Shown piece by piece: positions 12,314 through 14,770 of a DNA stretch of 39,845 nucleotides. The stretch comes from Octopus bimaculoides (Eukaryota): positions 9,784-49,628 of the forward strand of contig NW_026365845.1 of assembly GCF_001194135.2 (NCBI RefSeq), written 5' to 3'. How positions within the stretch are numbered: position 1 is the first letter of the stretch; the number at the start of each line of letters is the position of its first letter. The notes beneath the pieces were generated by a model. It saw only the letters and a program-made list of their open reading frames with translations. It made no database searches and was not told where the DNA came from. The position numbers and the translations under genes are program-made.

Positions 12314-12574
12314 GTCCAACAGCTGTTTTGAAGAAAATGATTCCCCACAGATATCACAATATGGCTTATCTTCATGAACGCATTTGTGTTTTTCAAGTGA
12401 CCGGTTTCCGAAAATGATTTACCACAGATATTACAATAATATGATCTTTCTTCAGTATCAATACGTTTGTGATTAGTCAACTGACTATTTTGAGAGAATG
12501 ATTTACCACAGATAATACAATGATATCACAATATCACACACATATCACAATGATAGGGCTTCTCTCTTGTATAC

Positions 12575-12984
12575 TCTTTACTCTTTTACTTGTTTCAGTC
12601 ATTTGACTGCGGCCATGCTGGAGCACCGCCTTTAGTCGAGCAGATCGACCCCAGGACTTATTCTTTGGAAGCCTAGTACTTATTCTATCGGTCTCTTTTT
12701 GCCAAATCGCTAAGTTACGGGGACGTAAACACACCAGCATCGGTTGTCAAGCGATGTTGGGGGGACAAACACAGACACACATACCCACACATACACATAT
12801 ATATATATATATACATATATGTGACGGGCTTCTTTCAGTTTCCGTCGACCAAATCCACTCACAAGGCTTTGGTTGGCCCGAGGCTATAGTAGAAGACGCT
12901 TGCCCAAGGTGCCACGCAATGGGACTGAACCCAGAACCATGTGGTTGGTAAGCAAGCTACTTACCACACAACCACTCCTGCGCC
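12575..12984 (-). mobile_element. Full-length SINE family B inserted in the ZF pseudogene
   Basis: Complete head to tail; splits a finger between cacaaacgtatccata and tacaagagagaag. Confidence 0.85.
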
Positions 12985-13213
12985 TATGGATACGTTTGTG
13001 ACTAGTTAAGGTCCTATTTACAGAAAATGGGTTTTTCTCCAGTATGAATACGTTTGTGAGTAGTCAAGAGACTGTTACATGAGAATGATTTACCACAGAT
13101 ATTACAATGATGCCGCTTTCTCCTGCATGAATGCCCTGGTGTCTAGTTAAGCCATAAATTTGAGAGAATCATTTACCATAAATATCGCAAATGATGTGGT
13201 TGCTCTCTTGTAT

Positions 13214-13608
13214 TCTTTCATTCTTGTACTGGTTTCAGTTATTTGACTGTGGCCATGCTGGAGCACCACCTTTTGTTGAACAAATTGACCCCAGGGCTCA
13301 TTCTTTGTAAGCCTGGTACTTATTCTATCAGTCTCTTTTGCCAAACTACTAGGTTACAGGGATGTAAACACATCAACATTGGCTGTCAAGTGATGATGTG
13401 GGGACCAACATAGACACATACACACACACACATATATATATATACACATACATCACCGGCTTCTTTCAGTTTCCTTCTACCAAATCCACCCACAAGGCTT
13501 TGGTCAGCCCAAGAATATAATAGCAGACACTTTCCCAAGGTGCCATTCTGTGGGACTGAACCTGGAACTATGTGGTTGGGAAGCAAGCTTCTTACCATGC
13601 AGCCACTT
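13214..13608 (-). mobile_element. SINE family B inserted in the ZF pseudogene
   Basis: Full-length, moderately diverged copy. Confidence 0.8.
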
Positions 13609-14357
13609 GCCACAGATATCACAGGTATATAGTTTCTCTCCAGTATGAATACGCTTATGTATAGTTATGCTAGCTGTGTAAGAGAAAGATTCACCACAGT
13701 TGTTGCACTGATATGGCTTGTCACTGGTATGAACTTGCTCATGTATAGTTTACTCACGTCTACAGAAAGATTTACTACAGATATCACAATGATATGGCTT
13801 CTGTCTTAAATGAATACGTTTGTGACTAGTTAAATTGCTGTTGGCAGGAAATGATTTAATACAAATATCGCAAAGATATGGCTTCTCATCTGATGAATAT
13901 GTTTGTGTCTAGTCAAGTGACTATTTTTAGTGAATGATTTACCACCGATAATCACAGCAATATGGGTTTTTTTCCCCAGTATGAATACGTTTGTGACTAG
14001 TCAAGTGACTATTACAAGAGAATAATTTTCCACAGATATTACGATGAGATGGCTTCTTTCCTGTATGGGTACATTTGTGTTTAGTCAAGTCTCCACTTTG
14101 GGAGAATGTCTTACCTCAGATATTACAATGATATGGCTTCTCCCTGTAGGAATACATTTGTGTGATTTCAAGTTACTGGATTCAGAGAATGATTTTCCAC
14201 AGATATCATTATGATATAGCTTCTCTCCTGTGTGTGTACGTTTGTGTATAGTTAAATTACTACTTTGAGAGAGCAATTTGCCACAGATATTACAGTGATA
14301 TGGCTTCTCCCCTATATGAAGGTGTTTTTTGGTTTAGTTAAGTTATTCATTATGGGA

Positions 14358-14770
14358 AAATGTGAGAGTTATCACTGCAATATCTGTGGTAAACATTCTC
14401 TGAAAAAGAGTCACTTATGTAAACGTGTGAGTGTTCACATACAAGTGTAACTATACGAATATCAAAATTTATTACAACACGACAACAATTATGAATAATT
14501 TGTCTGCTAAAAGACAAGGATCTTTCCCTCTTCAAATTTGACATTATCAACTTCAATTTCATCGTTGTCAACATCAAATTCAACAATGTCAACTTGAATA
14601 TCATCTACATATGGAAGCGTATGAACACAGTGATGACTTTGGTTTCTGGAGAGGATTGTTCTGGATTTTTGAAGAAATCGTTAGAAGAGAGCAAAGAAAT
14701 GGAAGTAATGAATAAATGGTTAAACTGATATTGATAGTGTCTATGTTGTATTTTCATTATCATCATAGTC
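14358..14770 (+). other. Orphan plus-strand ZF-gene 3'UTR with AATAAA (14711-14716)
   Basis: Collinear with the gene 5 3'UTR (31540-31925), sharing acaagtgtaac, ttcaaatttgacattatcaacttcaatttc, gaacacagtgatgactttggtttctg and ggttaaactgat. Confidence 0.8.

Follow-up and report, generated by a model that had tools for sequence, protein, structure and literature searches.

How did a degenerate zinc-finger array come to lie on the minus strand of a zinc-finger gene cluster, directly against a plus-strand 3' untranslated region (3'UTR) with a poly(A) signal, and could RNA transcribed across this junction act as an antisense transcript to the whole gene family? The question is raised by a stretch of 39,845 nucleotides from Octopus bimaculoides (C70988:9784–49628, hereafter the window), which belongs to an unplaced scaffold with many gaps; the genome has a size of 2.34 Gb. 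The window contains six plus-strand open reading frames (ORFs; genes 1 to 6), which consist nearly entirely of canonical C2H2 fingers of the Krueppel type, and an initial annotation had proposed that a decayed array, inverted at the DNA level, is fused to a 3'UTR and may give rise to antisense RNA. Our analysis makes it likely that the segment, one member of a tandem C2H2 gene cluster, is a rearranged and unprocessed pseudogene, i.e. the relic of an old intragenic inversion that was later duplicated.

An inverted finger array joined to a plus-strand 3' part

Comparison of the paralogues revealed a common layout of the family unit, in which a 5' region is followed by the start motif CATAATGAATAA, the finger array and a 3'UTR. 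In the segment under study, between genes 2 and 3, these parts do not share one strand, that is, the 3'UTR reads along the plus strand but the array along the minus strand. The 68 intact fingers of genes 1 to 6 were used to construct a nucleotide profile, which called ~16 finger units on the minus strand, running from 14300 down to 12326 (E-values to 5e-24). In BLAST comparisons the array is ~72–78% identical to each of the six paralogues (E down to 1e-145), and a conceptual fragment translated from it matches PF00096 (E = 1.7e-14). The decayed minus-strand array that had been annotated is thus confirmed, and so is its start motif: the minus strand carries CATAATGAATAACTTAAC, with the first C at 14354 and the ATG at 14350–14348. 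As to the end of the array, previously placed at ~14357, a boundary does exist, but homology to the paralogues reaches 14361, which is 11 nt upstream of the ATG. The minus-strand segment with family homology therefore extends from 14361 down to 12316.

The inverted copy is a pseudogene, because the frame opened by its ATG meets a stop after 12 codons, fingers 3, 7 and 10 contain nonsense codons, the reading frame changes several times across the array, and two short interspersed elements (SINEs; ~12571–12986 and 13214–13605) interrupt it. The repeated units typical of the C2H2 family are present; an intact ORF starting from the family ATG is absent. Read along the minus strand, the family N-terminal region (MNNLTKPKN...; 14303–14361, including the ATG and the 11 nt of 5' sequence) is followed by fingers 1–9 (13606–14302), which carry nonsense codons and frame changes, then by fingers 10–13a (12987–13213) and by the distal fingers 13b–16 (12316–12570). 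Finger 16 is cut at unit position ~39–45 by the boundary of a third, older SINE (11981–12315), which borders the array on its left.

On the right, eight bases (gtgagagt; 14362–14369) are homologous to neither strand and may represent filler or diverged sequence. A fossil terminal finger follows on the plus strand (14370–14450, with its stop codon at 14448–14450), which is homologous to a degenerate finger in the 3'UTR of the six paralogues, and then the 3'UTR with paralogue homology (14451–14716), ending in AATAAA at 14711–14716. Thus, the array does adjoin a plus-strand 3' part as had been claimed, but this part is not pure UTR, as the fossil finger comes first; the start of this finger at 14370 is the right breakpoint of the inversion. 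The poly(A) signal, whose position had been given correctly, aligns with the AATAAA of genes 1, 2, 4 and 5. Likewise, the earlier assignment of the 3' part to gene 5 as its closest relative holds both within the window and genome-wide (14404–14764 versus 31569–31932; 80.5% identity over 365 nt, E = 1e-92). Whether array and UTR share their nearest paralogue proved uninformative, since the array is equidistant from all six. Homology does not end at the poly(A) signal: in agreement with the initial annotation, it continues for 50–110 nt, to 14764 in the case of gene 5 and to ~14823 in the case of paralogues on C29, one of which (C29:583451–583868) aligns past the AATAAA to query position 424. 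No A-tract is present in the sequence directly 3' of 14716. The downstream flank (14717–14823, plus strand), still paralogue-like, consequently marks a DNA-level origin of the arrangement. A genome-wide search retrieved neither a second copy of the junction nor an allelic contig, only the window itself spanning 14200–14560. Each half of the junction is unique in the genome, the best other matches reaching 81–84%.

A paralogous copy on C29 and the origin of the rearrangement

A genome search with the left flank of the array led to C29:484–494 kb (locus L011), where a rearranged unit occupies 485.9–489.5 kb. Colinearity between L011 and the window, in the same orientation, extends over a transposon with internal 78-nt repeats, an interspersed-repeat fragment, the older SINE, the SINE/finger boundary and the distal five fingers, which correspond to window positions 12316 to ~13111. 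Identities amount to 76.6% for the repeat fragment (11659–11980) and 78.8% for the older SINE. Mapping of features in 50 kb of C29 and in the whole window scaffold yielded ~17 units in ~100 kb. In ordinary units the 5' region, fingers and 3'UTR lie on one strand, and among all mapped units only the window copy and the C29 copy are discordant in orientation. In the latter, the 5' region (485943–486304) and the 3'UTR (489403–489530) are on the plus strand and the fingers between them (489038–489367) on the minus strand. Because the inverted array is thereby framed by the 5' and 3' parts of what appears to be one gene, the arrangement bears the signature of an intragenic DNA inversion. The inversion also appears to be older than the segmental duplication, since the C29 paralogue carries the same transposon nest, the same boundary and the same inverted array. 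In this independent, diverged locus, the alignments hence confirm both the discordant orientation and the left boundary.

The transposon nest allows the events to be ordered further. Its first element, common to both copies, is the dispersed transposable element with 78-nt tandem repeats (9605–10965); it contains an assembly gap at 9825–10116, is colinear with L011 2303–3519 and has copies on many chromosomes with 66–73% identity. The repeat fragment and its flank (11531–11972) are colinear in C29 as well, the fragment matching L011 3915–4238. Genome-wide copies of the older SINE, which is in minus orientation, end at the same base, 12315, and because its junction with the fingers is common to the C29 paralogue, this SINE seemingly predates the duplication. 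By contrast, the younger SINE at 12571–12986 (minus strand), which is flanked by a direct repeat of roughly TAT(GG)ATAC, was probably inserted after the duplication, as the uninterrupted C29 counterpart lacks it. The other SINE of the younger-looking type (13214–13605, minus strand) resides within finger 9, in a stretch that is deleted from C29. Searches for further copies of the rearranged unit with the left flank, the SINE junction and the tandem-repeat element as queries returned, besides C29, dispersed transposons only. At the outer edge of the nest, the 3' flank of gene 2 adjoins the 78-nt-repeat transposon directly at 9605; in C29, 3.7 kb of intergenic blocks and the 5' region of the pseudogene come before the same transposon. 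Positions 9480–9830 of the window may accordingly hide either a 3.7-kb deletion or a wrong scaffold join through the repeat.

The two copies have decayed independently. The 5' region of the C29 copy retains a putative splice acceptor, ~65 nt upstream of it and further upstream blocks; its family homology breaks off exactly where the transposon nest starts, ~75 nt short of the ATG position, and between it and the array lie ~2.7 kb of transposons. The window copy has lost this 5' region and gained at least one SINE. Indeed, no family 5' region was detected on either strand between 9 and 16 kb, in line with the earlier remark that no promoter is visible. The C29 copy has lost ~0.9 kb across the original junction and lacks an equivalent of window positions ~13111 to ~14418, that is, of ~11 fingers, the N-terminal region, the original right junction and half of the fossil finger. 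Only ~125–150 nt of its 3'UTR are kept, without the AATAAA region. The flanks of the two copies differ by 21–23% (77–79% identity). The arrays are 85% identical, a value that drops to ~81% by arithmetic when an identical patch is left out, suggesting that array divergence between the copies is roughly neutral. This patch is a block of 66 identical nucleotides (window 12460–12525, C29:489134–489199, L011 5135–5200), for which the next best finger among the sequences compared reaches 91%. Its identity designates the distal fingers of the two loci as true counterparts, and it suggests a gene-conversion patch between dead copies or, alternatively, local constraint. Beyond the block, there is a 30-nt insert specific for the window, followed by ~20 nearly identical nucleotides.

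We infer that the events took place in the following order and left a locus that is now inert. In one ancestral copy, a DNA inversion would have turned around nearly all of the last exon's finger-coding sequence, beginning ~10 nt upstream of the ATG and ending where the fossil finger of the 3'UTR starts. The original orientation would have been kept by the 5' region and by everything from the fossil finger through the 3'UTR to the poly(A) signal. The junctions are not clean: eight bases on the right have no assignment, on the left the 5' region of C29 lacks ~65 nt (−75 to −10), and the registers do not fit, the distal finger stopping at unit position ~39–45 and the plus-strand remnant starting at unit position 1. 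This would favour non-homologous repair by end joining or template switching during replication over recombination between inverted repeats. Transposons may subsequently have accumulated in the left junction, and the whole unit may then have been duplicated to produce the window copy and the C29 copy, which would have diverged at about the neutral rate while each lost different parts. Several points weigh against this scenario. The left junction lies hidden under transposons and deletions, so that the origin may have been more complex, and the original right junction is gone from C29, where the exact join 14361/14370 is thus not confirmed. Moreover, the identical 66-nt block, the kept AATAAA and the lack of any other plus-strand AATAAA between 9427 and 14711 would fit some retained use of the locus.

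How far do these observations leave room for other origins? An origin more complex than a two-break inversion is not probable, yet it deserves to be taken seriously: the array of the gene may have been replaced by an inverted copy through template switching, or a whole neighbouring gene may have been inverted, followed by a deletion that fused its 5' end to the 3' end of another gene. The mismatch of unit registers, the unassigned bases at the right junction and the gap of ~65 nt in C29 would all be in keeping with such a history, and the near-palindrome TATCACTGTGATA in the finger consensus could favour strand switching. However, the C29 parts are arranged and spaced as in one gene unit of a tandem series on the plus strand, microhomology at the junction is not demonstrable, and a single intragenic inversion with later insertions and deletions is more economical.

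An assembly artefact, in which unrelated contigs were joined in inverted orientation within repetitive finger sequence, could be suspected in an unplaced, gap-rich short-read scaffold with ten runs of N, all the more as the junction is located in repeat-rich sequence beside a near-palindromic motif and its exact form lacks a second copy. Misassembly is nevertheless very unlikely, because the junction lies inside a gap-free stretch (10117–14945) and consists of unique sequence and not of a shared repeat, neither half has a second genomic copy, and the independently assembled C29 paralogue, ~21–23% diverged, displays the same discordant orientation and left flank. In addition, the mutational load of the array is that of a long-dead gene. 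Finally, twin priming generates copies in which the 5' part is inverted and the 3' part, in direct orientation, ends near a poly(A) signal, and a 5'-inverted retrocopy made by the machinery of long interspersed elements had to be considered for this reason. The chances of such an origin are minute, since homology passes the AATAAA by ~110 nt without an A-tract. Furthermore, non-exonic upstream sequence is kept in place in the C29 copy and the locus fills a slot of the tandem array. The preference of the initial annotation for a DNA-level inversion over a twin-primed retrocopy is thus well founded, and the intragenic inversion with later duplication is the origin that we adopt.

The finger sequence itself has a property that touches on the breakpoints. 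The motif encoding YHCDIC, TATCACTGTGATATCTGTGG, is nearly self-complementary (TATCAC-t-GTGATA; GATATC), e.g. at 14370–14389, a feature that derives from the finger consensus. Every finger might consequently hold a short potential cruciform or hairpin, and strand-switch rearrangements might be favoured in such arrays. We also considered a junction within the near-palindromic YHCDIC motif formed through microhomology of the 5' and the terminal fossil fingers. This was rejected, as 14345–14369 aligns too weakly with either strand.

The finger genes and the antisense question

The six intact ORFs are found at 2766–3686 (gene 1), 8064–8975 (gene 2), 18926–20182 (gene 3), 25432–26853 (gene 4), 30221–31303 (gene 5) and 35381–36289 (gene 6), all on the plus strand, and match the Pfam families zf-C2H2 and zf-H2C2_2 with E-values of 1e-57 to 1e-112. 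Their 68 canonical units measure 84 nt or 28 amino acids, follow the pattern C-X2-C-X12-H-X3-H and are connected by TGEKP-like linkers. The family 5' region, ~430 nt of conserved sequence with degenerate 'fossil' fingers, begins at a strong splice-acceptor-like motif, ttttcctatttcag|AATATCAC, composed of a polypyrimidine tract and CAG ~400 nt upstream of the ATG. Upstream of this motif, which we regard as a putative splice acceptor, conservation reaches only ~65 nt further. This suggests that the finger exon is the 3'-terminal exon, preceded by an intron and driven by a promoter located elsewhere. Use of the motif would place the exon start of gene 3 at 18549. The motif is found in the window at 2320–2393, 7690–7760, 18480–18549 and 24986–25055, as well as at C29:485880–485950.

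At the other end of the unit, the 3'UTR holds fossil fingers after the stop codon, the last ending in ...HVGIHTQV*, and AATAAA follows ~250–300 nt later. One to several decayed fingers are found after the stop codon in all intact paralogues (~4118–4330, 8976–9210, 20183–20400, 26854–27080 and 31304–31610), and a conserved fossil finger lies inside the 3'UTR. Apparently, the ancestor of the family gained a premature stop and the fingers downstream of it were turned into UTR. Gene 5 deviates in two details: ~10 nt of its 5' fossil finger are missing relative to the other paralogues, just upstream of the GTG/ATG region (30190–30225), and its ORF ends in HTGE*, earlier in the linker than in the other genes. 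In the genome, this type of 3'UTR is nearly restricted to a cluster at C29:430–660 kb and a few small scaffolds, and related finger loci number more than 270.

What would an RNA antisense to these genes look like? The physical premise of the initial annotation, a plus-strand RNA complementary to the finger scaffold shared by the paralogues, holds true. In the antisense of the array, ~80 stretches of at least 20 nt match the six neighbouring ORFs exactly, the longest measuring 29 nt; they are concentrated in the linker and Cys-knuckle scaffold. When windows of 30 nt were inspected, 320 out of 1146 had a target at one to three mismatches and none had an exact one. For a 250-nt piece, duplexfold predicted an intermolecular duplex of −280 kcal/mol as compared to −96 ± 6 for shuffled sequences. 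A plus-strand RNA covering 12316–14361 is therefore predicted to pair with paralogue mRNAs in an extended, imperfect duplex. In addition, the sense array of gene 2 (8064–8975) and the inverted array constitute an inverted repeat of ~75% identity, its arms lying 3.3 kb apart.

From where could such a transcript originate? The plus strand carries no AATAAA in the 5.3 kb between the signal of gene 2 (9427) and 14711, and a single ATTAAA at 10952. Apart from the ATTAAA, the first canonical signal that read-through from gene 2 would reach is thus the one at 14711. On the minus strand of the same interval, there are five AATAAA. Base composition would lead one to expect roughly four. Any plus-strand transcription would thus presumably represent read-through of gene 2, end at the kept AATAAA and act as a trans-antisense RNA, and nothing in the sequences compared appears to indicate selection for it. 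Look-ups of exact products with the protein of gene 3 and two ORFs that cross the junction yielded no record, although entries for this genome may have been withheld. A scan of 9–19 kb against Rfam gave nothing above threshold, with sub-threshold hairpin matches in simple repeats only, and no tRNA was found in a tRNA scan of the same region. By inspection, all three SINEs have a tRNA-like head and an A-rich tail on the minus strand, and hence any activity of RNA polymerase III would run in the sense of the fingers and not in plus direction.

A working antisense or hairpin RNA locus, in which plus-strand transcription is polyadenylated at 14711–14716, is clearly improbable as an account of the window copy. 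It would be fed by gene 2 read-through or an unrecognised promoter. Its RNA would either pair in trans with zinc-finger (ZNF) mRNAs or fold back, inside one read-through transcript, on the sense array of gene 2, and in both cases ADAR editing or small-RNA pathways would be supplied with substrate. The complementarity to a family of more than 270 related loci is real, the AATAAA is preserved in register with the paralogue signals with no other on the plus strand between 9427 and 14711, the 66-nt block is identical between the copies, and a precedent created by internal inversion exists in Lymnaea (antiNOS; PMC3537157). Against this stand the missing family 5' region with its putative acceptor, the ~2.7-kb transposon nest upstream of the inverted array in the window and the opposite direction of all three SINEs. 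Moreover, the C29 copy is devoid of most of the array and of the poly(A) region, so that no common functional core is conserved, and the two copies have diverged to about the neutral level. Nor is the locus special as a source, as opposite-strand arrays and convergent ZNF pairs are common on C29. The main cluster on C29 contains genes in both orientations, including minus-strand genes at 504–513 kb, and in one convergent pair the 3'UTRs at 501186–501517 (plus) and 504064–504408 (minus) leave the 3' ends ~2.5 kb apart. Antisense read-through across ZNF arrays is for this reason a generic possibility in the family. On balance, a maintained antisense function of the window copy is unlikely on these comparisons.

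A variant that joins both views, and would make the locus a cephalopod counterpart of the Lymnaea antiNOS pseudogene, is improbable: the ancestral inverted unit, equipped with its own 5' region and poly(A) signal, could have produced a natural antisense RNA directed at the whole family, and one or both descendants would perhaps still be transcribed in neural or embryonic tissue, the C29 copy via its own 5' region and the window copy via read-through of gene 2. Imperfect duplexes with many ZNF mRNAs would then serve as substrate for ADAR or small-RNA pathways, and the 66-nt block would reflect either constraint or gene conversion that is still going on.

Taken together, the preferred account, a pseudogene born by intragenic inversion and duplicated later, provides a well-resolved case of member loss in a fast-expanding zinc-finger cluster, in which one inversion within a gene would have killed a copy. 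The dead unit would have been duplicated along with its neighbours, and its descendants record independent deletions and SINE insertions, yielding relative dates for SINE activity. It is the colinear paralogue on C29 that is new here and by which the inversion is now seen as intragenic, old and subsequently duplicated. The question thereby moves from the reality of the junction, which is very probably real, to its transcription, and C29:485.9–489.5 kb becomes the second locus concerned. If a plus-strand RNA did exist, one locus would be antisense to a scaffold that hundreds of neural or embryonic ZNF genes have in common, and would offer a simple test case for double-stranded RNA (dsRNA) formed in trans in an animal with very heavy A-to-I editing.

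Comparison with known systems

A recent study of the C2H2 expansions in cephalopods does not discuss pseudogenes or antisense transcripts (PMC12513265), and our literature search for cephalopod ZNF antisense RNAs or pseudogenes returned nothing specific. In many respects the octopus locus resembles the unprocessed pseudogenes of KZNF-type C2H2 clusters, where a tandem member is disabled by rearrangement, nonsense or frameshift mutations and transposons and still occupies a regular slot among intact paralogues. It differs from them in that its lesion is an inversion limited to the coding array, with its own 5' and 3' parts in place, and in that the rearranged unit was itself duplicated later.

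Pseudogenes are also a source of endogenous small interfering RNAs and hairpin RNAs, as exemplified by the pseudogene-derived siRNAs of mouse oocytes and the hpRNA genes of Drosophila. Like these loci, the octopus segment places an inverted pseudogene near a sense copy, the array of gene 2 being 3.3 kb upstream and on the same strand as the would-be transcript, and dsRNA could in principle form within one molecule or between two. In contrast, the arms of the octopus locus are only ~75% identical.

The closest precedent, by analogy, appears to be the antiNOS pseudogene of the snail Lymnaea stagnalis described by Korneev and O'Shea. It arose from a duplicated NOS copy with an internal DNA inversion and produces a trans-acting natural antisense RNA (PMC3537157), which pairs with the NOS mRNA (PMC3537157; PMC2984423). 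In both molluscs, a duplicate gene copy underwent an internal inversion at the DNA level and kept a 3' part in sense orientation, and in both, transcription in the original direction of the gene would give an RNA that is partly antisense to the parental family. The differences are equally evident. Transcription, duplex formation and regulation were shown experimentally in Lymnaea, whereas the octopus locus has a predicted, thermodynamic potential for pairing. The target in Lymnaea is one parental gene, as opposed to hundreds of ~75%-identical paralogues in the octopus. The window copy shares with antiNOS the internal inversion in a duplicate; it lacks a kept 5' driver, as its 5' part is gone, and it is full of SINEs. 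The C29 copy, on the other hand, has retained its 5' region, but ~2.7 kb of transposons precede the array.

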